The notes: generated by a model not told the origin, from the letters alone. A stretch of 64,000 nt of DNA from Mobula birostris (GCF_030028105.1 NC_092376.1:170777613-170841612); one strand, 5' to 3'; shown: positions 25,017 through 64,000, counted from the stretch's first letter. A program made the numbers and translations.

Positions 25017-25029
25017 TATTTGGATGTTT

Positions 25030-35989: not shown

Positions 35990-36077
35990 ATGAGGCTGAG
36001 GTTTCACTGCAGAACTTTGCCAGCTGGTTTGATGTTTAATTTCTTTGTTCTACTACTTCATCCTGTTTCCACTCAAA
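35990..36077 (+). CDS. IgSF gene leader (signal peptide) exon
   Basis: Acceptor tcttacag at 35977; ATG at 35990 encodes MRLRFHCRTLPAGLMFNFFVLLLHPVSTQ; phase-1 donor A|GTAAGT; joins in frame to 54519. Confidence 0.75.
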
Positions 36078-36159
36078 GTAAGTGGTTTTTCTTCACCAAT
36101 CACAACCACATTGTTTTATTATTGTCCATGTAAACTCGCTGCCGATTTTCAAACTTACA

Positions 36160-36800
36160 TTGCTCTCTGAGTCCCTGAATGTGCTGCTGTCTCACAATCC
36201 ATCACATTATTAACAGAGTTCCATTTCTGAGCTCCTTCCACCAGGACTCTTCCCTTCTGCACCAACACAGTTCCTGTCCCAGTGAGCATGTTGCTAAGGG
36301 AAACTCTCCCTCTTTATCCTGTCCAATCTGTCTGCAGACTTTGATAAGTTGTCCACAATATCTCCTCCAACAACTCCCCACCACAGTCCAGCGGAGTGGA
36401 ACTGCTCTCACCTTGCTGATCCATTTGTAGCTTGAGACTCACCCGCAATTTCTTCACTTCATCTCCTGCACATTTTCCCCTGGGTCCCTCTGACAACCTA
36501 TCCTGGGATCCTCTTAATTCTCATTTTATAGCACTCTTTGATGACGCCAACCGAAAACTGATTCTTGCTTCCAATAGTCAACTGTCAACACCTCCTCGAG
36601 CTTGCCAACCCCTCTCTGAAACCCTCCACAATCTCCAAACTTGCGGATGGCATATGGAGTGCCTGATACAGGAAGAGCAAATATTACACACACACAAATC
36701 ATTCAACACTATTTCCTTGCAGAATGATGATATCTCCTGGCAACTGTCTGAGGCTAAAAACACAATAGCAAACATCGTGCCATATTTACCAGGAGATCGG
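36160..36800 (+). mobile_element. Ancient L2-like LINE RT remnant
   Basis: Frameshifted LS..FD..., LLQQL.TTVQRSGTAL and ILGSSx/PQGSILGP-like segments. Confidence 0.5.
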
Positions 36801-36819
36801 CTTCCATCCACAAAGACAG

Positions 36820-39800
36820 TGGGAGATAAGAGACCGCGTTGGGGAACTGGAGCTGCAGCTCGATGACCTTCATCTGGTCAGGGAGAGTGAGGAGTGGATA
36901 GAGAGGAGTTACAGGCAGATGGGCACACCGGGGCCACAGGAGGCAGACAAGTGGGTCACGGTTAGGAGGGGGAAGAGGAAGAGTCAGGTAATAGACAGTA
37001 CCACAGTGGCTGTGCCCCTTGATAATAGGTACTCCTGTTTGAGTACTGTTGAGGGGGACAGCTTACCTGGGGGGAAGCAACAGTGGCCATGCCTCCGGCA
37101 CAGAATCCGGCCCTGTAGCTCAGAAGGGTAGGGAAAGGAAGAGGAGGGCAGTAGTAATAGGGGACTCCATAGCAAGGGGCGATTCTGTGGACGCAGTCAG
37201 GAGACCCAGTTGGTAGTTTGCCTCCCTGGTGCCAGAGTCCGGGATGTTTCTGATCGCGTCCAAGATATCCTGAAGTGGGAGGGTGAGGAGCCAGAGGTCA
37301 TCGTACATATAGGTACCAAAGACATAGGTAGGAGAAGGGGAGAGTTCCTGAAAGGAAAATATAGGGAGTTAGGAAGGGAATTGAGAAAAAGGACCGCAAA
37401 GGTAGTAATCTCAGGATTATTGCCTGTGCTATGTGACAGTGAGAGTAGGAATGCAATGAGGTGGAGGATAAATGCGTGGCTGAGGGATTGGAGCAGGGGG
37501 CAGGGATTCAAGTTTTTGGATCATTGGGACCTCTTTTGGCGCAGTTGTGACCTGTACAAAAAGGACGGATTACACTTGAATCTTAGGGGGACCAATATCC
37601 TAGTGGGGAGATTTGCGAGGGCTACTGAGGTGACTTTAAACTAGAATGGTTGGGGGGTGGGAATCAAATTAAAGAGACTAGGAGAAAGGAGGTTAGATCA
37701 CAAATAGAGAAAGCTAGTAGACAGTGTGTGAGGGAGGATAGGCAGGGGACAGAGATCAGGAGCACTCAGACCAAAGATGTAGGGGACAAGGAAGAAAAAG
37801 ATAACAAAGTTGTTTACTCCATTAAGGATAAAAAGAGAGTAAGAGGTGGAGAGTTTCTTAAATGAATCTATTTTAATGCTAGGAGCATTGTAAGAAAGGT
37901 GGATGAGCTTAGAACATGGATTGATACCTGGAAATATGATGTTGTAGCTACTAGTGAAACGTGGTTGCAGGAGGGGTGTGATTGGCAACTAAATATTCCA
38001 GGATTTTGTTGCTTCAGGTGTGATAGAATAGGAGGGGCAAGAGAAGGGAGGTGTTGCATTGCTTGTCAGAGAAAATATAACAGCGGTCCTCTGGCAGGAT
38101 AGATTAGTGGATGCGTCCAGGGAGGCTATTTGGATGGAATTGAAGAATAGGAAAGGTGTTGTGACGCATATCGGGGTGTATTATAGACCACCTAATGGGG
38201 ACCGAGAAGTGGAGGAGCAAATTTGTAAGGAGATAGCAGATATTTCTAGTAAGCACAAGGTTGCGATTGTGGGAGATCTTAATTTTCCACACGTAGACTG
38301 GGAAGCCCATTCTGTAAAAGGGCTGGATGGTTTGGAGTTTGTCAAATGTGTGCAAGATAGTTTTTTGCAGCAATACATAGAGGTACCAACTGGAGAAGGG
38401 GCAATGTTGGATTTCCTGTTAGGGCATGAGATAGGGCAGGTAACAGAGATACGCGGTGGGGAACAATTCGGGTCCAGTGATCACAATACCATTAGTTTCA
38501 ATATAATTATGGAGAAGGATAGGGCTGGACCCAGGGTTGAGATTTTTGATTGGAGAAAGGCTAACTTTGAGGAGATGCGAAAGGATTTAGAAGGAGTGGA
38601 TTCGGACAATTTGTTTCATGGGAAGGATGTAATAGAGAAATGGAGGTCATTTAAAGGTGAAATTTTGAGGGTACAGGATCTTTATGTTCCTGTTAGGTTG
38701 AAAGGAAAGGTTAAAAGTTTGAGAGAGCCATGGTTTTCAAGAGATATAGGAAACTTGGTTCGGGAAAAGAGAGGGATTTACAATAAATATAGGCAGCTTC
38801 GAGTTAATGAGGTGCTCGAGGAATATAAAGAATGTAAAAAGAATCTTAAAAAAGAAATTAGAAAAGCTAAAAGACACAGCTTTAGCAAGTAAGGTGAAAA
38901 TAAATCCAAAGGGTTTCTACAGTTACATAAATAGCAAAAGGATAGTGAGGGATAAAATTGGTCCCTTAGAAAATCAGAGTGGACAGCTATGTGCGGAGCC
39001 AAAAGAGATGGGGGGGATTGTGAGCAATTTCTTTTCTTCGGTATTCACTAAGGAAAAGGATATTGAATTGTGTAAGGTAAAGGAAACAAGAAGGGTACTT
39101 ATGGAAAGTATAACGATTAAAGAAGAGGAAGTACTGGTGCTTTTAAGGAATATAAAAGTGGATAAGTCTCCGGGTCCAGACAAAATATTCCCTAGGACCT
39201 TGAGGGAAGTTAGCGTGGAAATAGCAGGGGCTCTGACAGAAATATTTCAAATGTTATCAGAAAAGGAGATGGTGCCGGAGGATTGGCGTATGCTCATGTG
39301 GTTCCATTGTTTAAAAAGGGTTCTAAGAGTAAACCTGACAATTATCAGCCTGTGAGTTTGACATCAGTGGTGGGTAAATTGATGGAAAGTATTCTTAGAG
39401 ATGGTATATATAATTATCTGGATAGACAGGGTCTGATTAGGAACAGTCAACATGGATTTGGAACGTCATGTTTGACAAATCTTATTAAATGTTTTGATGA
39501 GGTTACTAGGAAAGTTGACAAGGGTAAAGCGGTGGATGTTGTCTATATGGACTTCAGTAAGGCCTTTGACAAGGTTCCACACAGAAGGTTAGTTAGGAAG
39601 GTTCAATCGTTAGGCATTAATATCAAAGTATTAAAATGGATTCAGCAGTGGCTGGATGGGAGATGCCAGAGAGTAGTGGTGGATAACTGTGTGTCAGATT
39701 GGAGGTTGGTGACTAGTGGTGTGCCTCAGGGATCTGTACTGGTTCCAATGTTGTTTGTCATATATATTAATGATCTGGATGATGGCGTGATAAATTGGAT

Positions 39801-40725
39801 GAGTAAGTATGCAGGTGATACTAAGATAGGTGGAGTTGTGGATAATGAAGTAGGTTTTCAAAGCTTGCAGGGAGATTCAGGCCAGTTGGAAGAGTGGGCT
39901 GAAAGATGGCAGATGGAGCTTAATGCTGATAAATGTGAGGTGCTACACTTTGGTAGGACTAATCAAAATTGGACATACATGGTAAATGGCAGGGCATTGA
40001 ACAATGCAGTAGAACAGAGGGATCTAGGAATAATGGTGCATAGTTCCCTGAAGGTGGAATGTCATGTGGATAGGGTGGTGAAGAAAGCTTTTGGTATGCT
40101 GGCCTTTATAAATCAGAGTATTGAGTATAGGAGTTGGGTTGTAATGTTGAAATTGTATAAGGCATTGGTAAGGCCAAATTTGGAGTATTGTGTACAGTTC
40201 TGGTCACCGAATTATAGGAAAGATGTCAATAAAATTGAGAGAGTCCAGAGGAGGTTTACTAAAATGTTGCCTGGGTTTCATCTCCTAAGTTACAGAGAAA
40301 GGTAAAACAAGTTAGGTCTTTATTCTTTGGAGTGCAGAAGGTTGAGAGGGGACTTGATAGAGGTGTTTAAAATTATGAGGGGGATTGATAGAGTTGACAT
40401 GGATAGACTTTTTCCATTGAGAGTTGGGGGGATTCAAACAAGAGGACATGAGTTGAAAGTTAAAGGGAAAAAGTTTAGGGATAACATGAGGGGGAACTTC
40501 TTTACTCTGAGAGTGGTGGCTGTGTGGAACGAGCTTCCAGCAGAAGTGGTTGAGGCAGGTTCAATGTTGTCGTTTAAAGTTAAATTGGATAGATATATGG
40601 ACAGGAAGGGAATGGAGGGTTATGGACTGAGTGTAGGTCGGTGGGACAAGGTGAGAGTAGGAGTTCGGCACGGACTAGAAGGGCCGAGATGGCCTGTTTC
40701 CGTGCTGTAATTTTTATATGGTTTA
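36820..40725 (+). mobile_element. CR1 LINE, truncated within ORF1
   Basis: ORF1 esterase, then ORF2 pieces 37899..40710 (ETWL, GDLNFPH, SDHN, YMDFSKAFDKVPH, SGVPQGS); 3' end ccgtgctgtaat..tatatgg. Confidence 0.95.
37150..37644 (+). pseudogene. CR1 ORF1 SGNH/GDSL esterase domain
   Basis: VVIGDSIARG, PGA, HIGTKD and DGLHLN blocks. Confidence 0.9.
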
Positions 40726-41974
40726 TAAAGGAAAAGAACATGAGGAGATTATGAAAATTGTAATTGTAACAGGTTCTTGAGTTGGTATTATTAATCACCT
40801 CAATATTGACCAGAACAATGTAGTGCTGATGTTTAAATCGCACCATATTAGTTATGTGCATCCAACACAGTTTTTGACATAGTATATGAATATTGTAAAA
40901 GAGGCCAGACTGGACATTATATTTGGAAATGAGCCTTGCCATGTGAGGTTTGTGTTGGAGGGGGGTGAGCTGGAAAGTTGGCGCATTTTGGGAACAGCAA
41001 TCACAACTCTATAAATATTCAAATTGCTATCTATATTGGGAAGACTGGAACTCGGGGCAAATTGCTAAATCAGTGAAACGGTAATTAGAACAGTATTATG
41101 CAGGAGCTGGGGAAAGTTACTTGAGAGCAACAGTTATTGTGTAAGTCCACATCAAACACGTGAGAAATGGTTAAAAGTGAAATGATCAGGATTCGTGAGA
41201 GAGAAAAAAAGTGGAGATTAGCAGGGTTAATAAACATTAGGTGACAAAAGATACTTCAAATTTAGTCAAAAAGCCAAAAATCTCCATGAAATACCCTTGG
41301 TAGATGGGAATAAAGATGATTACAAGGAATTTTGCACAAACATTAAAAACAACAGAGTAACTAGGACGGAGTAGCACCACTCAATGATAAAGGAGGAAAC
41401 TTTTGTCTGAAGCACATAGAGATGTCCTTTATTTGTAGTATCAAAATGACATTTTGGTCTGTTAGAAAATGGAGCCTCTATCGTGTTAGAGTGCTTTGTT
41501 AATAACATTTGTGTAATAATATGCCAATGCACCTTGAAAATATGACAAACTGCAGATAGACAAGCAGGTGCAAATGCTTTCAGCATCCAGTGACCCTGTG
41601 GTCTCTGTATGATGAGAGACCTGGGCAAGGATGGTCAGGACGCATGTGCTAGAGTATCCAAGACTCGATACGAGACTGAAATGGGAACAGGGTTCTAAAC
41701 CAGACACTGGATGAGAATCCAACATAGATCTGACGATTGATCAGTTCAGGTGCCCTTTAAATATTAAAATCCTGGCACCAAATCATGACTGCCAATTAGT
41801 AGGGTGGTCCTGCATTTTTAAAAGGGCCGTGCCAGCTATCCACAATCCAGAGAGTCAGAGTGTTTAAATTGCAGAAGCTAGCACGTTTGAGTGCTTATTG
41901 TAACAGGACTCCCTCCCCTACAGCCAACTCTTGACAGCCCTGGTTGCTCAGAGAGATGATGATGGTAGTCATGG

Positions 41975-42115
41975 ATAAGAGCTAAATCAGGGATATCCCT
42001 TTCTGGAACCCAGCATAGTTTCTCGGGTCCAAATCCTTTCCAGTCCGTGAGGAACTGCCAAGTACTCTGAACAGTTGGTGAATTCAGAAGTGTTTTTACA
42101 GTGAAGACCTCTTTC
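41975..42115 (-). pseudogene. Integrase C-terminal chromodomain
   Basis: Hand translation KEVFTVKTLLNS...QFLTDWKGFGPEKLCWVPERDIPDLALI. Confidence 0.85.
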
Positions 42116-44244
42116 CATTGACAAACCTATCTGGCGGCGGGGCTAAAGAGCTGGTGGCAGGGCTAAAGAACTGGTGCTTCCATGTTTTAATTTGGATATG
42201 TGGAAAGTGGGATTGATCTTGAGGGTCTTGGGATCTTGCAAAGTGTAATCTACTGGGGGAACTTTCTTGAGAACCTTGAAAGGTCCAGTGAAATAGGGCA
42301 CCGATTTCCTAGACTCCATCCAGAGTTGCTGATCCTAAGTAGACAGCCAGACCTATTGCCAAGGCTACAAAGCTGGTCCCTGTCTTCTCTTGTGATTATC
42401 CTTCATTTCAGCCTAGTGGGTAGAGGCCAAAAAAATCTCTCTTGCCCTACTCCATTTTGCCCTGTTGCAGGAACACCAACCTCATTCTCCTTCTCAGGGA
42501 AGGGTGGTGGAGAATTCCCTAAGTGGCATTTGAACGGGGACATTCTGTGCACAGAATGCTGTAAAGTATTGTGGGCGACCTCTGCCCACATCAAATGGTC
42601 ACACCTCTCATCTGGTTTCTCTGACGACAGGCGTTCCTTCCATATCCTGGCTCACCCACTCTGTCTGGCTGTTAAGCTGCAGGTGAAACCCAGAGGAAAG
42701 AATCGCTGTGGTCTTGATCAGCATACCGAATGCCCTGTATGCCAAGCACACAGAATGGTGGACCCTGATCCAACACAATTTCCACTGGAAATCCATGGAA
42801 CCAGAATACTGGATGCAGGACAAGCTCAGCCATTTCCACCACTGACGGCAGTTTGCGCAACACGAAGAATTTGTAGGCTTTTGAAAAACAATCTACCATG
42901 GTGATGGTCTTCTGTTTGGAAGATGAAAGACCCATGACAAAATCCATGGAGATGTGTGCCCATAGTCTTTTCGGAATAGGTAGAAGATGAAGGCGCCCAT
43001 GAGGTTGGATGAGGTGTTCCTTGTTCCGGCCACACACCTTGCAAGCCTGCAGGTATTGTTGGACCTCTTTACCCATTCCTAATCATCAGTAGTTTCTCTT
43101 TAATAAACTCAAAGTTCCTGGTAACCCCTGGGTGAGTGGTCCTTCTAGATGTGTGTACCCATTGAAGTACCTTAGGCCTGACAAAACTTGGGATGAACAG
43201 ATGACCCAGAGTACCATTCTTGGGAATCACCCATTGCGGCTGGGCCTTGTGAACAAGCGTGTCGAATCCCCAACGTATGAGTGCTATCATCTTAACTTGG
43301 GACAAAATGGTGGAAGGTTGCTCCTCTCTTTCAGGTTCATTGAACTGATGAGATAAGGCATCCGGTTTTTAATTCTTTGACCCCCGGTCGATTGGTCAGA
43401 ACAAAATTTAACTGGTTAAAGAAAAGAGAACTCCAGTAAACTTTCTGCAAAAGTTGGCAAATCCCAGGAATCATTGGATTTGCTTCATATTGGATGGTTG
43501 TGGCCAATCTCTGACTGCTTGAGCCTTACTAGGGTCCATCTTGAGACTGGTATTGGAGATGGTAAAACCAAAAAATGAAATGCTGATTTTGTGAAATTTG
43601 GTTTTCTCCAGCTTGACATAAAGTCCATGATCTAGAAGTCTCTTTAAAATTTCTCTGAGATTAGCAACAAGCTCCTCCACGTACTTTGAGAAAATTAGGT
43701 TGTCATCCAAGTTAACAAAGGCACAGTTATAGAGAACATCCCGAAGGACATAATTTATAAAGGCCTGAAAAACTGCTGGAGCATTTGGGAGGCCAAATGC
43801 ATGCCTCATAGTGCTTTGTCAGTGTGTTGAATGTAGTGTCCACTTGTCACCCTCTTTTCTGTGGACCAGATTGTATGCACTCCACAAGTCCAGCTTTAAG
43901 AATGCTCTTGCCCCTTGGAGAATCCCAAAGGCAATGTTCATGAGTGGAAGTGGGTAACAATTCTTGGCCATTATGCAATTCAGTTCTCTATAATCAATGC
44001 ACGACCACAGGCCGCCCTTCCTTTTTCTGTATGAAGGAGAAGCCTGCAACCTCTGTTGAGGTGGAGGGTCGAATGAATCCCATGGCAAGAACTTCTTTTA
44101 TATACTCCTACAAAGCACTTCCCTGCAAGCTTGAGAGTGCATGCAATCAACCTCATTGTGGACAAGTCCCAGGCAGTAGATCTTTTGAACAATTGTAGGG
44201 TTGTGCAGTGAAAGAGTCGTGGCCTTTGCCTTGCTGAAGACCTA

Positions 44245-47200
44245 CATAGAACACAGAACATAGAATAGTACAGCACAGTACAGGCCCTTTGGCCCACAAT
44301 GTTGTGCTGACCCTCAAACCCTGCCTCCCATATAACCCCCCACCTTAAACTTCACTAGTGTATCTGCCTCCATCACTGACTCAGGCAGTACATTCACGCA
44401 CAAACCACTCTCTGAGTAAAAAAACCTTCCTCTAATATCCCCCTTGAACTTCCCACCCCTTACCTTAAAGCCATGTCCTCTTGTATTGAGCAGTGGTGCC
44501 CTGAGGGAGAGGCGCTGGCTATCCACTCTATCTATTCCTCTTAATATCTTGTATACCTCTATCATGTCTCCTCTCATCCTCCTTCTCTCCAGAGAGTAAA
44601 GCCCTAGCTCCCTTAATCTCTGATCATAATCCATACTCAATAAACCAGGCAGAATCCTGGTAAATCTCCTCTGTACCCTTTCCAATGCTTCCACATCTTT
44701 CCTATAATGAGGCGACCAGAACTGGACACAGTACTCCAAGTGTGGCCAAACCAGAGTTTTATAGAGCTGTATCATTACCTCGTGACTCTTAAACTCCATC
44801 CTTCCACTGATGAAAGCTAACACCCCATAAGCTTTCTTAACTACCCTATCTATCTGTGAGGCAACTTTCAAGGATCTGTGGACATGTACCCCAAGATCCC
44901 TCTGCTCCTCCACACTACCAAGTATCCTGCCATTTACTTTGTACTCTGCCTTGGAGTTTCTCCTTCCAAAGTGTACCACCTCACACTTCTCTGGGTTGAA
45001 TTCCATCTGCCACTTCTCAACCCACTTCTGCATCCTATCAATGTCTCTCTGCAATCTTCGACAATCCTCTACACTATCTACAACACCAGCAACCTTTGTG
45101 TTGTCTGCAAACTTGCCAACCCACTCTTCTACCCCCACATCTAGGTCGTCAATAAAAATCATAAAAAATAGAGGTCCCAGAACAAATCCTTGTGGGACAG
45201 CATAAGTCACAACCCTCCAATCCAAATGTGCTCCTTCCACCATGACACTCTGCCTTCTGCAGGCCAGCAAATTCTGTATCCACCTGGCCAAACTTCCCTG
45301 AATCCCATGGCTTCTGACTTTCTGAATAAGCCTACCGTGTGGAACCTTGTCAAATGCCTTACTAAAATCCATGTAGATCACATCCACTACACTACCCTCA
45401 TTTATATGCCTGGTCACCTCCTCAAAGAACTCTATCAGGCTTGTTAGACATGGTCTGCCCTTCACAAAGCCATGCTGACTGTCCCTGATCAGACCATGAT
45501 TCTCTGAATGCCCATAGATCCTATCTCTAAGAATCTTTTCCAACAGCTTTCCCACCACAGACGTAAGGCTTATTGGTCTATAATTACCCGGACTATCCCT
45601 ACTATCTTTTTTGAACAAGGGGACAACATTCACCTCCCTCAATCCTCCGGTACCATTCCCGTAGACAACAAGGACATAAAGATCCTAGCCAGAGGCTTAG
45701 CATTCTCTTCCTATGCCTAGTGGAGCAGCCTAGGAAATATTCTGTCAGGCCCCGGGAAATTATCCATCTTAATATATTTGAACAACTCCAATACTTCCTC
45801 TCCCTTAATATCAACATGCTCCAGAACATCAACCTCACTCATATTGTCCTCACCGTCATCAATTTCCCTCTCATTGGTGAATACCGAAGAGAAGTATTCT
45901 GTGAGGACCTCACTCACTTCCACAGCCTCCAGGCACATCTTCCCACCTTTATCTCTAATCAGTCCTACCTTCACTCCTGTCATCCTTTTGTTCTTCACAT
46001 AATTGAAGAATGCCCTGGGGTTTTCCTTTACCCTACTCACCAAGGCCTTCTCATGCCCCCTTCTTGCTCTTCTCAGCCCCTTCTTAAGCTCCTATCTTGC
46101 TACCCTACATTCCTCAATAGACCCATCTGATCCTTGCTTCCTAAACCTCATGTATGCTGCCTTCTTCCACCTGACTAGATTTTCCACCTCACTTGTCACC
46201 AATGGTTCCTTCACCGTACCATTCTTTATCTTCCTCACCGGGACAAATTTATCCCTAACGTCCTGCAAGAGATCTCTAAACATCCACCACGTGTCCATAG
46301 TACATTTCCCTGCAAAAACATCATCCCAATTCACACCTGCAAGTTCTAGCCTTATAGCCTCATAATTTGCCCTTGCCCAATTAAATTTTTTTCTGTCCTC
46401 TCTGATTCTAGCCTTTTCCATGATAATGCTGAAGGCCAGGGAGCGGTGGTCACTGTCCCCCAGATGGTCACCCACTGAGAGATCTGTGACCTGACCCGGT
46501 TTGTTACCTAATACTAGATCTAGTATGTCATTCCCCCTAGTCGGCCTGTCAACATACTGTGACAGGAATCCGTCCTGGATACACTTTACACACTCTGCCC
46601 CGTCTAAACCCTTGGAACTAATCAGGTGCCAATCAATATTAGGGAAGTTAAAGTCACCCATGATAACAACCCAGTTATTTTTGCACCTTTCCAAAATCTG
46701 CCTCCCAATCTGCTCCTCTGTATCTCTGCTGATACCAGGGGGCCTATAGAATACCCCCAATAGAGTAACTGCTCCCTTCCTGTTACATTACTCACCCTTT
46801 CTGTAGCTGTAATAGTATCCCTGACCAGTAATACTACCCCTCCTCCCCTTTTTCCCCCTTCTCTATCCCTTTTAAAGCACTGGAATCCAGGATTATTGAG
46901 AATCCATTCCTGCCCTGGTGCCAGCCAAGTTTCTGTAATGGCCACTACATCATAATTCCATGTATGTTTCCAAGCTCTCAGTTCATCACCTTTGTTCCTG
47001 ATTCTTCTTGCATTGAAGTACATGCACTTTAGCCCTTCTACCTTACTACCTTTACACCCTTTATTCTGTTTCTCTTTCCTTAAAGTCTCTCTGTATGTTA
47101 GATCTGGCTTTACTCCATGCACTTCTTTCACTGTTCTATCATTCCGGGTCCCATCCCCCTCGCAAATTAGTTTAAACCCTCCCGAACCATGCTAGCAAAC

Positions 47201-48105
47201 CTACCTGCAAGGACATTGCTCCCCTTCGAGTTCAGGTGCAACCCATCCAAACTGTACAGGTCCCACCTTCCCCAGAAGAGATCCCAATGATTCAAAAATC
47301 TAAAACCCTGCCCCCTACACCAACTCCTCAGCCACGCATTCAACTGCCATCTCCTCCAATTCTTACCATCACAGTATCGAGGACGGTAAACTTATTATTC
47401 AGGGGAATGGCTACAGGGGTGCTCTGCACTACCTGTCTACTCACCTTCGCTTTCCCCCCTTGACTGACACCCAACGACCTGCTTCCGGCAGCCTAGTTGT
47501 GACTACCTCCCTGTAGCTCTCACCTCTGACTGTCTCATTCTCCCTCATGTGCCGAAGGTCATCCAGCTGCTGCTCCAGGTTCCTTACACAGTCTTCCAGA
47601 TCGCTCAGCTGCATGCTCTTCTGGCAGATGTGACTCTGCGGGAGAGGGGAGTTCCCCCAAAACTGCCACATCTCACATGAGAGGCACATCACCTTTTTAG
47701 GAGACATTGTAAAGCCTAACTGGGAGCAAGCTCGTCCTCCGCCTCTTCTCGTCGAAGCCTCTCGAGTCAAAGCCTTAAAGCTCCACTCGTTCACTGGCCC
47801 ACTCACTCACTGGCCGCTCCGCTTGAGCTACCTCTCTATTTATTGAGCTACCTCTCTATTTATTTGAGCTTTTCAAACTGCTTTGTCACCTGACCTCGAT
47901 TGCCCAATCAGCTGCTTTCTGTTGTCTGAGCTATTCAAATCTTGATTGTCTAATCAACTGCTTTCTACTGAGCTATTCAAATCTTGATTAACTTGATTGC
48001 ACAGTCCAACGGCCAAAACTGCTTGAATCTCTCGAGTCAAAGCCTCAAAGCTCCACTCCTTCACTGGCCCACTCACTCATTGGTCGCTTTCCACAGCACA
48101 GCACT
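44245..48105 (-). mobile_element. Near full-length CR1 with internal deletions
   Basis: Repetitive 5' UTR, ORF1 N-terminus (CLSCEMW...ICQK..LEQQLDDL), ORF2 including a 442-aa open RT segment at 44314..45642, and a (catagaa) tail. Confidence 0.95.
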
Positions 48106-48175
48106 TCTTCCAAACCCTTGTAGATGGAAGGGATTTCAACTGGCTTGGGTGTTACAACTGCTCCTGAACATTCCT

Positions 48176-50535: not shown

Positions 50536-52084
50536 TGGTTATATGGTTATCTGGTTAGGATAACTCCTGGGGCTCCTTAGGTAGCAGGGGTGATTCGGTA
50601 GAGTCTCTTCCATAGGTTTACAAGAATCTTTTGTTCAGACAGAGAACAAATCAGTCTTCAAATCCTCATCCTTATCCTCAGACAATGCTAATGAAGCACT
50701 ACAAATGGACTTCGTGCTCCTGGGACTAGGCTGTCAAGCGACTACATTTAGGAGCCTTTCTCTTAGATGGGCATGGCGATGGGTTCCCTTAGGCTTGGCT
50801 ACTAGGGCTTCAGACCGCTTGAGCACCACCTTGGTGGGCCTTTTGGCTTGCTTCTGAAATAATTACCCTCTCTCTGCAGTTCCAGTGCACCCCCGACTAG
50901 ACATGGTCGGGACACACATGGTACTGTTGACTGGAGCTGGCTTGTTTTCCCTTGGACGCTGAATTGGGTCTTCCAAAGGCTCCAGGCTACTCTGAGCAAA
51001 AGTCTGCCTCCTTGTCGGCCGAGGCCCCAGGGGAGTCTGGGGGTCAGAATACCAAAGCAAACACATTCCCTCTTGCAACGACTTGATAATGCAATGATTT
51101 TCCCATCCTTTCAGTTCATGGAAGGGTTATATCTAGAAGATCTCTGCTTTCAGCTTGACACCAGAATCAGTAGGATTGGGAGTAGTGGCTTCTACCATCA
51201 CAGTCTGCTTGACACTGCACAATCTTAGCAGTTTTTCCAATGGCTGCAACCCCCCTTTTGTCTGGGCAGATCCTGCAGTAGGAATTGCTTTTATAAATGC
51301 CAATAGGGGAGTATTCGGACATTCAGCCTGCATGTGACCTGTTTCCCTACAGTAATAGCAATAATCTCGACTCCGACACCTAGACCTCTCATCAGTGAGA
51401 GTCTTGTGCAGCCGATTTGCATTGGCTCGACAGGATCTTGTGCAGGAGACATGCTGGTCATTGAATGAGGGCAGAAATGGAGCAATGAAGCGAGGCTTGG
51501 GCAAGTCCTCTTCAACCTCTGGAGAAAGTGTTCAGCCAAGTGATTATTGAAGCTGATGAACTGATCAATTGGAGCCTCTAAGACCTTTACCAGCTTTCCT
51601 AAGGCAAAGGCATCCATGAATTCAATTCAGAATCCGTGGCAATACAGAGGGGGCCAAAGCTTCCCCGTTCCAGCCACAGTCCTCACCCAAAGGCCGAAAC
51701 TCAGTAGCACAGTTGACTGCTGACCAACTACCTTGACGCATGTTCATCAAATGGTTCGAGGCTCTGTTTACGCTGGTGGGATGATGGCGCACCCTCTTCA
51801 TGGCGTTCATGAATTCTTCCAAATCAAGAACAGATTTTTAACCTCCATTCCCAATGTGGAATGGCCTAGGCCAGGCCTCACTGACCATCACTGCCTATGG
51901 TCGCTCCGAAGTTTTGTCAACACATCCAAGTGGGCACATGGGGAGACAGCATACTCGACCACTGCTACTCTCCCTTCCACAACGCTTATAAAGCGCTCCT
52001 CCACCCACCGTTTGGAAAATCCGATCATTTCTCCATCTTCCTGCTGCTGAGTACAGCCAGAAGCTGAAACAAGAGGCACCCATA

Positions 52085-54145
52085 GTTAAAACCGTCCACT
52101 GTTGGTCCAACCAATTGGTCTCTATGTTACAGAATTGCTTTGATGACATCAACTGGAATGTCTTTTGTGATGAGGTTGACTCCGAGTTTTATCCGGATGA
52201 GGATGACTCACAAGCTTCATCTGGAAGTGTATTGAGGATGTTGTCCCTCAAAAATCGGTCGGGGTCTATCCAAACCAGAAACCCTGGATCAACAGTTTTG
52301 TGCGTGCCGCACTTACCACGCGAGACAGAGCTTACGCCGTCAGGAACCAACAGGAACTCAAGAAATGCAACTACGATCTACCCAAAGTCATCAAGGCAGC
52401 AAAATAACACTACAGGAACAAGATCCAGATACAACTCTCCACCAACACACGTAGCTTATGGCAAGGTCTGCATGCCATAGCAGACTTCAAAGCTAAACAC
52501 AGTGGAGTTTCCAACATTGTTGCCTCTCTGGCAGATGAGATAAATCTTTTTTACACTCAGTTCAATGTTGCCACCATTGCGTCCCTGAGGAGAGCCATCG
52601 AAGCGACCTACACCTTGGTCATCTCTGAGACTGAAGTACGCAGGATGAGCGGACAGTCACAAGGCTGTGGGACTGGACAACATCCCAGGGCGGGTACTCA
52701 GAGTGTGCGTAGCACAGCTGTCAGATGTGTTTATAGACATTTTTAATCTCTCCCTCTCCCAGTGTAGAGTGCCCTCCTGCTTCAAAACATCCACCATTGT
52801 TCCTGTACCTAAAAAGACCAAAGTAACATGTCTGAACGACCGGAGTCCTGAAGCACTCTCCTCAAAAATAAGCAAGTGCTTTGAGAGGCTGGTCAAGGAC
52901 TATCACCCACACTAGAACCCCTACAATTCACCAACTGACACAACTGATCAACAGATAACACAAAAGCCACAGCTCTACACACCGTCCTTACACATCTGGA
53001 GGAAAAGGATGCTTACGTGAGAATGCTGTTCTTAGATGACAGTTCAGCATTCCACATTATACTTCCCTCCAGACGACAAGAAGCTCAGAGACCTTGGCCT
53101 TCACCCTGCCTTGTGTAGCTGGATCCTGGACTTCCTCTCAGATCGCTGGCAGGTGGTAAGAGTGGGCTCCCTCACATCCACCCCTCTGAATTTCAACACA
53201 GGTGCCCCTCAGAGCTGTGTCCTAAGCCCCCTCCTTTATGCTCTGTATATTCATCACTGTGTCACCACCCACAGCTCCAATCTGCTAATTATATTTGCTG
53301 ATGATACTACATTGATTGGCCTTATCTAAAATAATAAAAAGGCAGCCTACAGAGAAATCATCACCCTGACACAGTGATGTTAAGAAAACATTCTCTTCCT
53401 CAGTGTCACAAAAACAAAGGAGCTGCTTGTGGACTACGGGAGGAATGGAGGAATGGAGACTGGCTAACTCCTATTGATAGCAATGGATCTGGGATTGATT
53501 AAGTGAGCAGCTTTCAGTTCCTCAACATACACATCGCCAAGGATCTCATGTGGTCTGTACATACTGGCTGTGTGGTGAAAAAAGCACAACGGCTCCTCGT
53601 TCACCTCAGACAGTTGAAGAGGTTCGGCATGAGTCCCAGATCCTAAGTACTTTCTACAGGGGCACAATTGAGAGCATCTTGACTGGCTGCATCACTACCT
53701 GGTACGGGAACTGTACTTCCCTCAATTGCAGGACTCTGCAGAGAGTGGAGCTGACAGCACACTGCATCTGTAGATGTGAACTTCCCACTATTCAGGATAT
53801 TTAAAGAGACAGATGCATAAAAAGGGCCCAAAGGATCATTGCGGACCTAGTCACCTCAATCACAAACTGTTCCAGCTGCTGCCATCCAGGAAACAGTACC
53901 GCAGCATAAAAGCCAGGACCAACAGGCTCCGGAACAGCTCCTTCCACCAGGCCATCAGACTGATTAATTCATGCTGACACAACTGAATTTCTATGTTATA
54001 TTGACTTCCCTGTTGTACATATTATTTATTATAAATTACTATAAATTGCACATTGCACATTCAGACAGACATATAACATAAATATTTTTACTCCTCATGT
54101 CAGTGAAGGATGTAAGAAATAAAGCCGTTTTAGTTCAATTCTGGA
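52085..54145 (+). mobile_element. Rex1/Babar-type LINE
   Basis: [57 protein letters not shown] and ESILTGCITTWYGN; aataaag tail. Confidence 0.88.
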
Positions 54146-54518
54146 TAAAGGAGCGAGTTGATTCTGTCTCAGGTCTTGCCTGACAAGGGCTAGCAGTGCA
54201 GTGTGGTGTGTGCAGGATCCACCTGATCCCCACGCATCTCAAGAAACCCCGTCACAGGGTAGAGCAGATGGAGATCCAGCACAACCATCTTCCACCTCAG
54301 TCTGTCTTCAACTTGCTCCTCTCCTGTCATGAAATATCTTTGGATTCAGCTGGGTTATTCTAGACAGACAGATCTTCACAAGCTGCATCTGCCTCACTGA
54401 AGGTTCTGTAGAAGATCAAAAAGAATGGGAAAAAAAAGTTCAACATTAATGACCTACTTGGGGTAAAGGAAATATGTCTTAAATATTCATTCAGTTGTTG
54501 TTGTTTCTCTTTATACAG

Positions 54519-54851
54519 AAAACAGAGATCAGGTTTATTTCTTGGAAAAAAATTATGATGTCATTATACTCGAAAGACCAGACAATCCTGGAAATGGCAC
54601 TTTTGTCTTGGAATGGAAACCACACTCAGAGCAGCACACCTACCAAATGTGGACTTTCACCAGAATCTCAGGACAGTGGATTGGAAATTGGAACGATGAC
54701 TGGAGATCGCTTAACTTGTACCAGGAAATGAGATTGGATTATAGTACTGGTAATCTGATAATTAATGGACCCAACTTTAAATTTGCAGGATTATTCACTT
54801 TAACTCAAGCACAGAAAATCGTGAAGCAATATGAAATATTTGGAATCAAAG
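54519..54851 (+). CDS. IgSF gene exon, D1 (V-set-like, no cysteines)
   Basis: Polypyrimidine tract plus tacag acceptor; 333 nt open, phase 1-1; AAG|GTAAGT donor; LEWK, NLII and FAGLFTL at the V-set C, E and F strand positions. Confidence 0.85.
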
Positions 54852-55063
54852 GTAAGTGGGGAAGACAAGAATTTCTGATTATCTTCAAATAATTTCATGT
54901 AAAATGATGAGAGGTTGTGAGAATCATGAGATTTCTTTCACCCAGTGAAGAGTGAATCTCCCATTAAAACAAATAGGGGGAAGATTCTTGATATCTGCTT
55001 GTGAAATTTTTGTCAGGAGCAAATATCGTTTGATCATTTTACCAGATACAGCAAGGAAAAGAA

Positions 55064-56640
55064 GCAACAAAAACAAAATGCTGGAGGAACTCAACAGGTC
55101 AGCTAGCATCTATAATTTGAAATGAACTGTCTATGTTTCGTTCTAAGACCCTTCATGAGAACAGGAAAGGAAAAGGGCAGAAGAGTAAAAGACTGGGGTA
55201 GAGGGAGGAGCGACAGCTGGTAGAACATAGAACAGTACAGCACAGTACAGGCCCTTCGGCCCACAATGTTGTGCCGACCCTTAAATCCTGCCTCCCATAT
55301 AACCCCCCACCTCAATTTCCTCCATGTACCTGTCAAGTAGTCTCTTAAATTTCACTAGTGTATCTGCCTCCACCACTGACTCAGGTAGTGCATTCCACGC
55401 ACCAGCCACTCTCTGAGTGAAAAACCTTCCACTAATATCCCCCTTGAACTTCCCACCCCTTACCTTAAAGCCATGTCCTCTTGTATTGAGCAGTGGTGCC
55501 CTGGGGAAGGAGCGCTGGCTATCCACTCTATCTATTCCTTTTAATATCTTGTATACCTCTATCATGTCTCCTCTCATCCTCCTTCCCCCCAGAGAGTAAA
55601 ACCCTAGCTCCCTTAATGTCTGATCATAATGCATACTCTCTAAACCAGGCAGCATCCTGGTAAATCTCCTCTGTACCCTTCCACATCCTTCCTATAGTGA
55701 GGGGACCAGAACTGGACACAGTACTCCAAGTGTGGCCGAACCAGAGTTTTACAGAGCTGCATCATTACCCCATGACTCTTAAACTCTATTCCTCCAATCT
55801 TTGTGTCGTCTGCAAACTTGCCAACCCCCTCCTCCATCCCCACATCCAGGTCATTAATAAAAGTCATGAAAAATAGAGGTCCCAGAACCGATCCTTGTGG
55901 GACACCACTAGTCACAACCCTCCAATTCGAATGTACTGCCTCCACCACGACACTCTGCTTTCTGCAGGCAAGCCAATTCTGAATCCACCTGGCCAAACTT
56001 CCCTGGATCCCATGCCTTCTGATTTTCTGAATAAGCCTACCATGTGGAACCTTGTCAAATGCCTTACTAAAATCCATGTAGATCACATCCACTGCACTAC
56101 CCTCATCTATATGCCTGGTCACCTCCTCAAAGAACTCTATCAGGCTTGTTAGATACGATCTGCCCTTCACAAAGCCATGCTGACTGTCCCTGATCAGACC
56201 ATGATTCTCTAAATGCCCATAGATCCTATCTCTAAGAATCCTTTCCAACAGCTTTCCCACCACAGACGTAAGGCTCTCTGGTCTATAAGTGAATCCACGG
56301 GAGGAGAGTGGGTACGTGTGAAAGGGAGGGAATGACGTGAGAAGCTGGGCTGTGATAGGTGGAAGAGGCAATGGGCTGAGGCAGATGGAAGCTGATACGA
56401 GAGGACTGTGGAGCATGGAATAAGGGGGAGGAGATGGGAAACAGGGGAGGAAGGTGTGGGTAATGTGCAGCTCACAGAGGCTGGTGAGGGAAAAGGGACT
56501 GGGAAGGGCTTGTTGTCTGGGAATGGAAACCAGACTCATGGCTAGACATCTGGAAACTGAGGCCTTTCCAATGAACAGACAAGGCCTGGTGGAACAGGGT
56601 GTCTCACTGGAGAATGAGACACAGTGTACCAGCAGATGGA
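55064..56640 (-). mobile_element. Penelope remnant split by an internally deleted CR1 (about 55213..56290, minus strand)
   Basis: Pseudo-LTR end at 55064..55212 and purine-rich tract from 56290; the CR1 piece matches the 44245 copy. Confidence 0.75.
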
Positions 56641-57974
56641 TCTGGATTCTGGCACCATTAATTTGAGAATTAGTAAATACACCTGTGAACTTGCTGTATT
56701 GTCCACTCTGAGTCAAACACAGCCAAGGAAACGAATTCAGAAATAATATGAAAACTTTGGGATTAAAGGTGAGTGGGCCAGACGAAGATCAATAACATGT
56801 TTCCATGCAAATAATTAGAGTACTTCTCCCACTAAAACAACTAAGAGAAAAAGTATTTGTTCATTGCCTCTGACATAAAAATGGTTTGTCAATTTTCTGC
56901 AAGAACAGGAAGCCATGGAATCTACCCCACAGTGAGTATTATGGTCTGTTTACTGTCATGGTGTAAAATGCACTGAATTGTGTTGTGAAACATGTCGATG
57001 ACTTCTAATGAATCTCAGCACAGTGGGTCCGGGGTGAGACTAGACATTGAAACTACTGATCAGTGTTATCCAGTGGACCATGTCAATGGCTCGCTTGGTC
57101 AAGATTAATGAGGAAGCCAATTTTCTGTGGAGTTTGGACTCTGTCAGAGAGTTCACTCCATAAGGGCAACTTCACAAAGGGATATATGTATTAATTCAGT
57201 TGCATCTCAAACTTGTTTGCATTCTTGAATCAAAATTACCATGCGGAGACCAAAAAAAAGAGAACAGCTGGAATTTCCCTATGTGAAATGTGAATAAATA
57301 AAGGACTTCCAGTGCTGTGTTTCCTAAGGTGAAATTCCCAGCTTGCTGGCATTTACAGGAGGTGAATCTGCTGGCACTCTCAATTACTGCACTCTACACG
57401 TACAACCAGGATTTTGTAGGAATACACTGATATTCCCGGCATTGACAGTTGGAAAAACTGTTGGTGGTCCTGGTGCGAGGTCACTCATTTCACTGGGGAA
57501 TTTACAGGGTGTGGAGGAAAGGGTGGAAGAAAGTAAATTACTTGATTCTGTGAGTTTGTGTTTAGATGAATTTGTTCATTTATAAGTATTTTCAAATGAT
57601 ATTATATGTTAAATATTTATTAAATGAAAATATCTATTTATTTAATATTAATATAATTGGTGCCATTCAGAAACATTCCAACACTCTGGCAGCTTCAGCA
57701 GGGGACAAACCTGGGGGTGTGACTCTACCTCCTGTGGACAATTCTCCACAGTTGTGCAGGTGGGGCTAGTCTGTCCCATCTATATGACATAAAGCCAGTC
57801 AGTTAGACCTTGCCACCATATATGGCATTGCCAATTGGCTCCAGGTTGCTCCCAGCCAATCTTTGTCCTCTGGAGAATCAGAGCTGTGAGCTACACAACC
57901 CAGCCCAATCCTGTCTGTTAGCCTAAAATTAGTGCTGCATGCTGGGTTGGTGAGGGGAAAGCTTACTGTCTCAT

Positions 57975-58125
57975 GGAGACACAAAAGACTGCAGATGCTG
58001 AAATCTGGAGAAGTGCACAGTGCTGGAGGAACTCAACAGCTCAGGCAGCACCAATGCAGAGAAATGCACAGTCTGTGTCCATTTCTCTCCAGAGATGCTA
58101 CCTGACCTGCTGAGTTCCTTTGGCT
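57975..58125. repeat. Decayed Penelope-derived inverted repeat
   Basis: ggaactcaacagctcaggcagca ... gatgctacctgacctgctgagttcc; same family as 21346..21579. Confidence 0.6.
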
Positions 58126-58639
58126 TATAATGTGTCACTGTCAGACAGACTAAGGAACAGTAGAGTTGGGTCCTGAAGTGCCATCCTGACCAAAGGACTG
58201 GCCTCAGACCTTTGATCTTGGAATGAAATTGCACCAGATTGAATTCACCACAGCAGAATATCCGTTAACTTAAACACCCCTGGATTTCATTATTTCTTGC
58301 CATCTTCCAGGATGGACAAAGTCAGGGAATTCTTCTAGAGAACCAGCCTCTCTCGGAGAGAATTTCTTCATGGAGGGTCAATAATTGGAGACCTGCCCAG
58401 GTACATTAAATAGAGTCAAAGAGTCTTGGAAAAGTACAGCAGAGAAACAGGCCCTTCGGACAAACTAGTCCATTCCAAAACCATTCAAACAGCCTACTTT
58501 CATTGACCTACACCAGGACCATAGCCCTCTATCCCCTACCCTTTCATGTTTTTGTCCACACTTGGCTTAAACGTTGAAATCGCATGCACCACCTTGTATT
58601 GGCAGCTCATTTCACACACTGACGACTTTCCTGTCATGT

Positions 58640-61495: not shown

Positions 61496-62436
61496 CTTTT
61501 CACATTTCACCCTTGACCCATGCCCTCTGGTTGTAGTCCACCCCAACCTTAGTCGAAAAAAGCCTTCTTGCATATACCTTATCTATACCCGTCAAATCTC
61601 ACAATCTTCTACATTCTAAGGAATAAAGTCCAGAAATGTTCCATCTTTCCTTATAATTCAAGTCTTCCAGACCTGGCAACATCCTTGTAAGTTTTTCTCT
61701 GTTGTCTCTACTTTTTCTGCAATATTTCCAACTTTCCTGTAGATTGGTGACCAAAACTGCACACAGTACTCTGCAGGTGGCCTCACCAACGTCCTGTACA
61801 ATTTCAACATTCTGTAACTTCAAAGATATTTGATGTTAATCTTGTCCATAGTCTCCCAGCGCATGTGTCAGGTTGACTTACTGAAGTGTGCTGGCACCTT
61901 GAGGACAGAGTCAGACTGGTGACTTTTCCATGTAATACGGTAATCCTGGTAAGACAGTCGTTACAGTTCCAGTGCACCTTCCGCTGGTGAGATTCAATCT
62001 CCTGCCTACTGGGGTGTCGAAAGTTACAAACCTCTTCAAACGGTGTGTCCCTGAGCCGAACTCTGACACTCCAGTGGGTTTAGGGGAAAGGTCACTGGTT
62101 CTGCTCGGCCTCATTAACCCAGGTTGAGCTGGGCTGAGTTTCAATGGCCCTGCTGTGCAATTCCATGACGTGAATGCACACATTAATGCAGAACTGCTGA
62201 GAACAGAAACATCCTGAGGTCAAAACAGAAAATGCTGGAAAACCCAGCAGATCAGGCAGCATTTGTGGAACAATTAATGATTTCAGTCAAACACACATCA
62301 TCGGAGTAGTTTATATTTCAGATTTCCAGCACCTGCCGTTTTCCTTGATGGTCACATCCTGAGTTCAGTTCGAGCCCGATCATTGGACTGTACACGTCAC
62401 CACTCACTCTGAATCTGATTGGTCTGTTTCTCACAG

Positions 62437-62706
62437 TTGAGACGAGTTCACAGCAGCCTCTGTTGGGCAGTGACGTCACCCTCAGCTGTACCATCTCCAG
62501 ACTCCCAGATACCGTCAGTCTCCACTGGAAACCAGTGGGCTCATCCCAGCAGAACAGGAGAAACACTGATCAGATCCGCCTGAATAACACCGCCTATCTG
62601 ATGGTCCGACACGTTACAGTGAAGGATGGGAAGTTGTATCAGTGTGAAGTGCGGGAAAACGGAAACATTGTTCTCACAAGCAAAGCAGATTTTACTGTAG
62701 GCACAG
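62437..62706 (+). CDS. IgSF gene exon, D2 (C2-set-like)
   Basis: tttctcacag acceptor; 270 nt, phase 1-1; VTLSC..LHWK..LYQC; CAG|GTAAGT donor. Confidence 0.93.
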
Positions 62707-63052
62707 GTAAGTGTTGTTATCAAATGCTGGATATTAAAATTGCACTTGTATCATCAGTGGTTCATGTAATGTTGGGAGTGAACCCCTTGAAAGAGCATAG
62801 TCCATGATCAACTGTCCTCTGTAATTTGCATCAATAGTTAGACAGAAGCTTCTAGAAAGTCTCTCTGCGGAGTAGCTGCCTGCTTGTCTCTGTGTAACAG
62901 CCACAGCACATAGGAAGGAGGCACTTCTGTCAGATTTGTACAGAAGACACGTGTAACTAGACACGTGTAAGTGTTGTTATCAAATGTTGGATCTAAAATT
63001 ACATTTGTATAATTGGTGATTCATGTAACGTTGGGAGTGAACCCCTTGGAAA
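62707..63052 (+). repeat. Local duplication of the D2 donor and first 86 nt of the intron (62707..62792, 62967..63052)
   Basis: Both copies read gtaagtgttgttatcaaatg.tggat...gttgggagtgaacccctt. Confidence 0.9.
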
Positions 63053-63267
63053 ATTGTAGTCTTTTGAAACTAAACTGTAATAAGTACTTTTATCATATTT
63101 AATTTGCTTTTATGTGGAATTCACAAAATGCCACCTTTTAAACCTTGAACAGCTGGACAAAACATAAAACATTTTTATATAAATGTGGATGAGAATTTTT
63201 CATCATTGTCTCTGAAAATAGGCTGTTATAACAGGTGACTATGTTCTCCACTGTCTCTCTGATACAG

Positions 63268-63606
63268 CTTTATATCGGAAGCGTTACACCCTTTATCGTC
63301 CCAGCACAGATTACAGTGAACTCCACCTGGTTTGCTATTCTCGTTCTGCTTACACTCGTGGTGAGTGGACCTGGAAATCACGTCAACCACAGGACCAACA
63401 GAAACAAATAGCATCTGCAACAGTCTATCAGCCCATCAATGTCGGTAGCACCGACTTTGAGAATCGACTGATGACCTCGGTGAAAAAATTCAATGGCAAG
63501 AATTTCAGTGTGAGGATTGTCCCGGTTTTGTTTGGAGATGCCGGAGTTCACATATGTTCTCTAGGGTCAAATACATTTCCGACCATTGAGCTAATCACAG
63601 TGAAAG
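63268..63606 (+). CDS. IgSF gene exon, D3 (V-set)
   Basis: gatacag acceptor; 339 nt open, phase 1-1; LHLVC..EWTW..FSVRI..GDAGVHIC; AAG|GTAGG donor. Absent from the ORF track; translated by hand. Confidence 0.9.
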
Positions 63607-63684
63607 GTAGGAGACAGAATGTTGCAGTTGCGTTTACCAATTAAGTCGTTGTTTAGAATGTAAATAACCTGCTTGTTTCCACAG

Positions 63685-63945
63685 TCACGGCTGAACCGTC
63701 TGATCCAGTGACTGAGGGAGACACCGTTACCCTGAGCTGCTCTGTGTCTGACGTCACTGCATCAACCAGACTGGTTTGGATCAACGGAGATGGTGAAACC
63801 ATTGGAGACAAAACACTGACTGGGGAAGAGAAATCACTGAGTCTGATCATACAGAAAGCTGAGAGAGGCAGTGGGAAATGGACGTGTGGTGTGTTTGATC
63901 AAGACAGGCTCCGGATTATCGTCCCATATTATCAAGAGTGCAGTG
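63685..63945 (+). CDS. IgSF gene exon, D4 (C2-set with WxC F strand)
   Basis: tttccacag acceptor after a 78-nt intron; 261 nt, phase 1-1; VTAEPSDPVTEGDTVTLSC..LVW..GKWTC; GTG|GTGAGT donor. The gene continues beyond the window. Confidence 0.93.
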
Positions 63946-64000
63946 GTGAGTTACTGCAGGTTTGCTCTTCATATTGAGAAACATGATCACATTTTGTGTC

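Follow-up and report, generated by a model that had tools for sequence, protein, structure and literature searches.

Introduction

Whether cartilaginous fish possess CD4 was for a long time controversial, and how the CD4/LAG-3 pair arose continues to be debated. Here we describe the 5' part of an immunoglobulin (Ig) superfamily receptor gene found in a stretch of 64,000 nt from Mobula birostris (NC_092376.1:170777613-170841612, hereafter the window), whose ectodomain is CD4/LAG-3-like in its predicted structure and which belongs to a large family of fish proteins nearly all labelled "uncharacterized". Bona fide CD4 and LAG-3 exist in sharks as separately named genes, neither of which has an intron in the first domain, D1 (PMC10768021). 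A further four-domain receptor of fish is the teleost G6F-like protein (G6fL), a thrombocyte receptor of type I with four extracellular Ig-like domains (PMC3528668), characterised by a YxN motif and by a tyrosine-based activation motif of immunoreceptors (ITAM) split over two exons. The third term of comparison is given by the paired-receptor clusters, namely KIR/LILR, the teleost LITR/NITR and the skate MDIR genes. The skate MDIRs are said to be CD300/pIgR/TREM-like, and Ohashi et al. in 2010 reportedly described G6F-like as resembling CD4/LAG-3.

A preliminary description of the window, made from its sequence alone, had proposed an intact receptor gene with five phase-1 exons and a V-C2-V-C2 layout, assigned to a separate, expanded CD4-related family. 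The results reported below bear on the exon model, on the family, on the fold and on the number of domains that the complete receptor would carry.

Gene structure and splicing

Translation and joining of the window stretches returned a reading frame of 430 codons with no stop, distributed over five exons on the plus strand. All four introns, of 18,441, 7,585, 561 and 78 bp, are of the GT..AG type, with eight canonical splice sites and every junction in phase 1, so that retranslation reproduced the coordinates, intron sizes and motifs originally claimed. The leader exon (35978..36077) carries the ATG at 35990, encodes a signal peptide and ends at a phase-1 donor (AAA|GTAAGT after 36077). Its acceptor (35977|35978) sits 12 nt 5' of the ATG, and at least one further 5' exon is therefore expected upstream. 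Intron 1 (36078..54518, 18.4 kb) separates it from the D1 exon (54519..54851), whose V-type Ig domain lacks the B-F cysteine pair; D1 has no cysteine and returned no Pfam match. The D2 exon (62437..62706) encodes a C2/I-type domain with an ordinary YxC (LYQC; Ig_3, E = 1e-8), and the D3 exon (63268..63606) a V-set domain (weak V-set match, E = 9e-4) in which the F-strand tyrosine is replaced by histidine (VHIC). The D4 exon (63685..63945) encodes a C2-type domain (ig, E = 3e-7) with a WxC F strand (GKWTC), followed by a phase-1 donor, GTGAGT, at 63946. The window stops 55 bases past this donor and, as already recognised, the transmembrane and tail exons lie beyond it. Pfam domain calls and AlphaFold2 (AF2) models agreed on an Ig superfamily receptor of V-C2-V-C2 layout, and both the GKWTC of D4 and the LYQC of D2 were confirmed.

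Two alternative acceptors, at 54495 for exon 2 and at 63310 for exon 4, were considered and rejected, the sites at 54519 and 63268 being those that match the paralogue junction residues and the RNA joint; with the acceptor at 54519, the same "STQKNRDQ" junction results as in the paralogues. All five exons of the prediction are real and their layout is far beyond chance: the joined product is colinear with annotated elasmobranch proteins. Its overall identity to P0081, an M. birostris paralogue of 987 aa, is 88% in the order leader-D1-D2-D3-D4, and 54 of the 56 strongly conserved family columns are retained, the exceptions being L131V and Y325H, the latter corresponding to the D3 F-strand tyrosine.

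The use of these junctions was then assessed in four public sequencing runs from two organisms (A and B), which were treated as RNA owing to exon-only coverage and spliced contigs. The run labels are guesses, run X1 being labelled "probably DNA", and the species of the runs may differ from M. birostris; contigs were compared over positions 62300-64000. The contigs cover exons 3, 4 and 5, with zero depth in the 561-bp and 78-bp introns. The RNA joint 62705>63269 and the joint 63604>63683 (GT..AG, 78 bp skipped) occurred in all four runs, and in three of them the loose end before exon 3 consists of the last 19 nt of exon 2. Beyond 63946 the contigs of both organisms translate to GSGNSIYFLHQ, the start of a D5 exon. 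The E2/E3, E3/E4 and E4/E5 junctions predicted from the window were found in contigs of close relatives and are those used by the gene family. For the D1 exon, 41% of the exact 31-mers were present in two runs, a value that fits a transcript of about 97% identity, possibly from an allele or an orthologue.

A side observation concerns organism B, in which a D2-type exon is spliced straight to a transmembrane exon (…EDYSFKHTTF…). This splice matches the two-domain M. hypostoma protein P0151, which indicates that short isoforms arise in the family through the skipping of exons.

The receptor family and its tails

A search with D3 only among 1.8 billion representative sequences returned 53 proteins; when full-length relatives served as queries, 116 and 62 proteins were recovered. 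The resulting family numbers over 100 predicted proteins, known from sharks, rays, skates and a chimaera (the elephant shark) and nearly all of them "uncharacterized"; a single nurse-shark entry bears the name "obscurin-like". Weaker but colinear kin were recovered from sturgeon, paddlefish, bichir, eels, tarpon, cyprinids and coelacanth. One M. birostris chromosome carries at least 11 annotated paralogues, and a Rhinoraja member shows the same layout of one exon per domain. No published description of the family was found in the openly accessible literature on shark CD4/LAG-3, G6F-like, MDIR and paired receptors. Judged by its predicted protein, the window gene is an ordinary, possibly unannotated member of this unstudied family already predicted in databases.

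All four domain types align well across the cartilaginous- and bony-fish members. The WxC of D4 (W381, C383), the D3 disulfide and the D1 tryptophan are invariant or nearly so, and D2 shows YxC across the whole family. The number of Ig domains is four or eight, or two in a few members. The tails fall into three types. In the first, a plain transmembrane segment is followed by a long tail with two immunoreceptor tyrosine-based inhibitory motifs (ITIMs), IHYxSI and VIYxQI; in the second, a transmembrane segment containing lysine (…GYLFVKL…) leads into a short tail; in the third, the transmembrane segment contains arginine (…VITRSL…), again with a short tail. As read from the predicted proteins, these tail types are characteristic of a family of paired inhibitory/activating receptors.

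The irregular or very long members P0087, P0001, P0182 and P0183, with 12-16 Ig domains in Scyliorhinus, Mustelus and Hemitrygon, stand apart from this scheme; P0087 shows the domain order D3-D4-D2-D3-D4. These proteins may represent either further tandem doublings or read-through gene models.

The organisation of the family resembles that of KIR/LILR, LITR/NITR and MDIR in several respects. Like these systems, it is a tandem multigene cluster whose near-identical ectodomains are joined to either an ITIM tail or a charged transmembrane residue, its membrane-distal domains diverge fast, and the genes are separated by pseudo-exons and debris. The differences concern the types of domain and the architecture of V-C2 rods, and neither sequence nor fold searches returned KIR/LILR, LITR/NITR or MDIR as close kin, the NITR V domain scoring at the general V-fold level. 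No protein named MDIR was present among the family search matches.

A comparison with teleost G6F-like can be made by description only. The likeness consists in the fish type-I receptor with four extracellular Ig-like domains (PMC3528668) and in the YxN-type motifs (IYDN, IYEN) at the end of sturgeon and bichir family members, whereas the cartilaginous-fish members carry ITIM or charged transmembrane tails and not ITAMs. The bony-fish proteins concerned, P0025 and P0032, end in …IYDN…IYEN…, which are YxN motifs of the Grb2 type rather than ITIMs and recall the tails of G6F and G6F-like. A profile search from the bony-fish members for proteins named G6F-like, CD4 or LAG-3 returned only sturgeon, paddlefish and bichir relatives together with CD22-like noise.

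Predicted fold and relation to CD4 and LAG-3

The fold was examined on an AF2 model of D1-D4 of P0081, built with the family alignment, and the window D1 was modelled separately. The P0081 model showed a predicted local distance difference test (pLDDT) score of 87.6 and a predicted template modelling (pTM) score of 0.85, with single continuous strands running from D1 into D2 (residues 100-114) and from D3 into D4 (residues 304-319), thus forming rigid V-C2 rods. A Foldseek search against the PDB placed CD4 or LAG-3 at all of ranks 1-8 (E from 2e-16 to 4e-14), other multi-Ig proteins appearing from 1e-13. Against the Swiss-Prot models, CD4 and LAG-3 entries filled ranks 1-18, with IGSF8 and Ly-9 coming next.

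The VIA superpositions pointed in the same direction. D3D4 was fitted on rat CD4 D3D4 with Z 15.7 and a root-mean-square deviation (rmsd) of 2.7 Å over 170 of 177 residues, and on human CD4 D1D2 with Z of about 14.5-15 and rmsd of 3.1-3.5 Å. D1D2 was fitted on CD4 D1D2 with Z 13.2 and rmsd of 3.3 Å over 172 residues, and D3D4 on LAG-3 D3D4 with Z 13.1, rmsd of 3.5 Å and 24% identity. Taken together, the two-domain superpositions on CD4 and LAG-3 show rmsd values of 2.7-3.5 Å over 159-177 residues. Among the 50 VIA matches listed, the other hits involved one V domain only or two domains at 10 Å or more, with the exception of nectin-1 (3sku_D, 5.7 Å over 163 residues).

The sequence comparisons were less specific. 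The family profile matched LAG-3 among PDB sequences at 2.7e-12, colinearly over D3-D4, and CD4 at 9.4e-10, and the best full-domain alignment of the D4 profile was LAG-3 D2, at full length and including the WxC. Three results make the sequence-level kinship with CD4/LAG-3 a weak one: CEA, titin, NCAM and pIgR scored higher with the same family profile; D1, alone and as a profile, returned nothing significant among PDB sequences; and no CD4-specific Pfam family was matched. When modelled alone, the window D1 (pLDDT 88.4) is a generic V-set domain in its fold: Z values of 10-13 were reached against many V domains, and it resembles NITR, NTB-A and CD8 to the same degree as CD4 D3; a search of the ESM Atlas with D1 gave no usable match. 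We conclude that the ectodomain is CD4/LAG-3-like in its predicted structure, while the kinship in sequence is only suggestive.

The Cys-less first domain also raised the question of a SLAM/CD2-family receptor of the Ly9 type, which combines the V-C2-V-C2 order with a Cys-less N-terminal V domain and would not be CD4/LAG-3-like. Such an assignment would account for the missing disulfide of D1, as in SLAM/CD2 V domains, and for the similarity of D1 alone to 2B4, NTB-A, CD84 and CD48, which is roughly equal to that with other V domains; the Receptor_2B4 Pfam family was matched in 5 of 30 members (E about 1e-3), and Ly-9 is found among the Swiss-Prot fold matches. However, each of the 18 CD4/LAG-3 entries stands above Ly-9 in rank (for Ly-9, E = 1.2e-14 and template modelling score 0.21, versus 1.6e-19 and 0.36), and two-domain superpositions at about 3 Å were obtained only with CD4 and LAG-3. 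Moreover, D2 and D4 hold one canonical cysteine pair each with no extra disulfides, D4 has the WxC, and the relatives' tails display ITIMs instead of TxYxxV/I switch motifs. Considering the structural rank, the cysteine patterns and the tail motifs, a SLAM-type receptor is very improbable, and the CD4/LAG-3-like assignment of the fold is retained.

The likeness to CD4 includes the four Ig domains in V-C2-V-C2 order, the rigid V-C2 rods with a continuous G-to-A strand and the WxC on the D4 F strand. Shark CD4 is likewise encoded by one exon per domain without a D1 intron (PMC10768021). On the other hand, the window D2 has YxC in place of the WxC of CD4, the domain lacking the disulfide is here D1 and not D3, sequence identity is only about 14%, and single-copy CD4, present once per haploid genome in tandem with LAG-3, is opposed to a multigene family with four- and eight-domain forms. 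The relatives' tails bear ITIMs or charged transmembrane segments and not the Cx(C/H) motif that binds LCK; no CxC or CxH was found in the tails of P0081, P0185, P0091 and P0139. With LAG-3 the family shares the V-C2-V-C2 fold and a D4 profile that spans LAG-3 D2 including its WxC, and an inhibitory tail would be expected here by analogy. LAG-3, however, has one ITIM-like (F/Y)xxL(D/E) motif, in a tail encoded by a single exon, versus two canonical (I/V)xYxx(I/V) ITIMs in the relatives, and the window gene lacks the long D1 loop and belongs to a multigene family with domains doubled to eight.

A true CD4 or LAG-3 orthologue was accordingly rejected on the basis of the multigene family, of the D2 domain without WxC and of relatives' tails without Cx(C/H) or (F/Y)xxL(D/E). 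The identity is also ruled out by the existence of bona fide shark CD4 and LAG-3 as separately annotated genes. The single-exon D1, which had been taken as evidence against CD4 and LAG-3, does not discriminate between them and the window gene because the shark genes also lack a D1 intron (PMC10768021). The assignment to a separate, expanded family other than CD4 itself is supported, the ectodomain of this family being most like CD4 and LAG-3 in predicted structure.

Closest paralogues and length of the ectodomain

Three proteins, all with eight domains, are closest to the window gene. P0081, which ends in two ITIMs, is 97% identical in the leader, 90% in D1, 94% in D2, 78% in D3 and 91% in D4. 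For P0091 of M. birostris (957 aa, Arg-transmembrane tail) the corresponding values are 93%, 92%, 93%, 73% and 88%, and for P0185 of M. hypostoma (1020 aa, ITIM tail) 97%, 89%, 94%, 87% and 91%; the window D2 is also 94% identical to that of P0079. The best-matching relative thus varies by domain, and because of this switch an exchange of exons among paralogues is suggested by the predicted sequences. Over 11 relatives the mean identity was 66% for D1, 74% for D3, 88% for D2 and 86% for D4, indicating that the V-type domains diverge faster than the C2-type ones. In a maximum-likelihood tree the window D1 falls in a clade with P0081, P0091 and P0185 (support 100/99), and the D1 domains of the four-domain members form a separate clade, also with 100/99.

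The window probably holds the front half of an eight-domain receptor gene. This reading follows from the D1 tree, in which the window groups only with eight-domain members, from the end of D4 and from the RNA contigs. In the window D4 ends with "PYYQECS|gt", which is of the same type as the junction "PYYQExS|GSGNSIYF" between D4 and D5 in eight-domain members; most four-domain members end D4 with PYNLEVRV. The contigs, in turn, pass from the D4 exon into a D5 exon and not into a transmembrane exon. A relic Lys-transmembrane exon between D4 and D5 was sought in the eight-domain gene of Rhinoraja and rejected, none being present in the 1.8 kb there. The V-C2-V-C2 stretch had earlier been presented as the layout of the receptor itself; four domains are probably not the whole ectodomain, as the closest relatives and the D1 clade are all eight-domain and the contigs continue to D5.

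Several observations weigh against the eight-domain reading or its ITIM tail. P0139 joins a similar D4 end, "PDYQERS", to a Lys-transmembrane exon, the sister protein P0091 has an Arg-transmembrane tail instead of ITIMs, and in run X4 of organism A one contig of depth 13 keeps the intron after D4 up to position 64000 with 96% identity. In addition, both the continuation to eight domains and the ITIM tail are drawn by analogy from relatives and relatives' RNA and not from the downstream exons. The gene might accordingly be complete with four domains, either by means of its own nearby Lys-transmembrane exon, as in the putatively activating P0139, P0129 and P0056, or by reading through the intron (ECSGELLQVCSSY-stop), which would yield a secreted four-domain form. 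The splice of P0139 and the X4 contig would both fit this alternative, as would P0127, an annotated four-domain form that ends soon after D4. We consider it unlikely, since the window D1 lies with the eight-domain members and away from the four-domain clade, the contigs reported past the D4 donor are mostly spliced to the D5 exon (X1 and X2 have two such contigs apiece), the depth of 13 of the intron-keeping contig compares with about 80-430 summed over the D4 exon, and the Rhinoraja eight-domain gene has no transmembrane exon between D4 and D5.

The eight-domain reading being preferred, the state of this particular copy has still to be weighed. No identical annotated protein was found in the searched length ranges of 316-1006 and 543-1727 aa, and the window copy appears to be unannotated within them. 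Between the contigs and the window there are differences of a few percent; at 62593, 62622, 63863 and 63872 no contig has the window's letter, and most of these differences alter the amino acid. The transcripts seen come from close paralogues or from the orthologue of another species, and the window copy may be silent. These findings count against a working gene and would be expected of a recently dead or silent duplicate, open in the window part and either broken downstream or untranscribed, which would be decaying like the orphan exons. The lack of an identical protein despite the paralogues annotated on the same chromosome, the change of the conserved D3 F-strand tyrosine to histidine and the decayed family exons at 3473-3739 and 56503-56794 would all suit this explanation. 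A dead copy is nevertheless quite unlikely when set against 430 codons free of stops and frameshifts, eight of eight canonical splice sites, the retained conserved positions and the D1-exon 31-mers exactly matched in two runs of probable RNA; if the runs derive from another species, as is possible, the missing window letters mean little. The description of the gene as intact is thus borne out for the part within the window, but it does not extend beyond it, given the lack of an identical annotated protein and the window-specific letters missing from the RNA contigs at several sites.

Candidate upstream exons, transposons and family fragments

Two tentative candidates for upstream exons were found on the plus strand. 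The first, a candidate 5' non-coding exon at 22846..23003, showed 60% identity in tblastn to M. hypostoma P0127, within the N-terminal extension of that protein (residues 16-67); its window copy is interrupted by a stop codon, and the donor AAG|GTAAGT comes directly after it. The second, a candidate transposon-derived 5' exon at 24364..24483 (120 nt), has AG and GT at its two borders and shares 88% identity with P0091 over residues 1-40. It lies inside an ORF1-like open reading frame (ORF, 23853-25016) of a long interspersed nuclear element (LINE), which is followed by an endonuclease/reverse transcriptase ORF (LINE region 23853-26443, plus strand). The P0091 gene model splices the counterpart of this piece in frame to the leader exon, and the window copy has no ATG. 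The annotated N-terminus of P0091 apparently begins in an exonised transposon piece 5' of the true signal peptide, and this start is probably an annotation artefact or a 5' untranslated exon.

LINE ORFs for reverse transcriptase crowd the two large introns and lie on either strand. Intron 1 is full of LINE copies in both orientations, including RVT_1 ORFs at 39283-40305 (plus strand) and 44314-45642 (minus strand) and further reverse transcriptase-like ORFs at 48-50 kb and 52-53 kb. An ORF at 803-1438 on the minus strand combines an rve core with an integrase zinc-binding domain; it belongs to a long terminal repeat retroelement or a related transposon and is unrelated to the receptor gene.

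The preliminary description had also mentioned paralogue debris, and two family fragments were indeed located, both on the plus strand. A decayed D1-like pseudo-exon lies in intron 2 at 56503..56794, 1.7 kb 3' of the working D1 exon, and shows 43-49% identity to D1 and D5 domains of the family; it contains an in-frame stop and retains a "GIK|GT" donor remnant. This pseudo-exon also preserves a three-residue stretch (…QPRKRI…) missing from the working D1 and from P0081 D1. The second fragment, an orphan D2-like half exon at 3473..3739, is 82-87% identical to D2 of P0139 and P0116. The D2-like part spans about 195 nt, similarity is lost after "MVRH", and the upstream flank resembles the intron preceding D2. 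No other family exon was found close to it, and because of this isolation the fragment, as judged from its sequence, is debris of a segmental duplication.

Proposed mechanism and significance

According to the proposed model, the window contains the 5' portion of a gene for a type-I membrane receptor, encoding the signal peptide and D1-D4, with one phase-1 exon per domain. The gene would run past the window into D5-D8 exons, a transmembrane exon and a cytoplasmic tail, to which two ITIMs are assigned by analogy with the nearest paralogues. The eight Ig domains would form four stiff V-C2 rods, and the fast-diverging membrane-distal V-type domains, chiefly the Cys-less D1, would bind a putative ligand. 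Upon ligand engagement, phosphorylated ITIM tyrosines would recruit SHP-type phosphatases and damp the cell, while sister genes with Lys or Arg in the transmembrane segment might pair with ITAM adaptors and activate it. ITIM members and charged-transmembrane sisters of such opposite action would make the family a paired activating/inhibitory receptor cluster.

Taken by itself, this locus adds one more family member, possibly unannotated and half inside the window, and means little beyond another copy. As a whole, the family uses a CD4/LAG-3-like V-C2 rod as scaffold for ITIM receptors and for putatively activating charged-transmembrane receptors, sometimes doubled to eight domains. It is spread over chimaeras, sharks, rays, basal ray-finned fishes and coelacanth, and might conceivably, although we hold this to be rather doubtful, represent an ancient sister lineage of CD4/LAG-3, with V-C2 modules homologous to those of the co-receptors for class II of the MHC (major histocompatibility complex). 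If so, CD4 and LAG-3 would have arisen from, or alongside, multigene paired inhibitory/activating receptors, and family members may themselves recognise MHC-like ligands. In a sharper variant of this doubtful reading, one locus would give both Lys-transmembrane four-domain (activating) and eight-domain ITIM (inhibitory) forms by exon choice after D4. Should the likeness reflect common descent, the family would be the nearest outgroup for the origin of the MHC class II co-receptors and would provide, for the oldest jawed vertebrates, a candidate set of paired receptors of a natural killer-like or myeloid kind.

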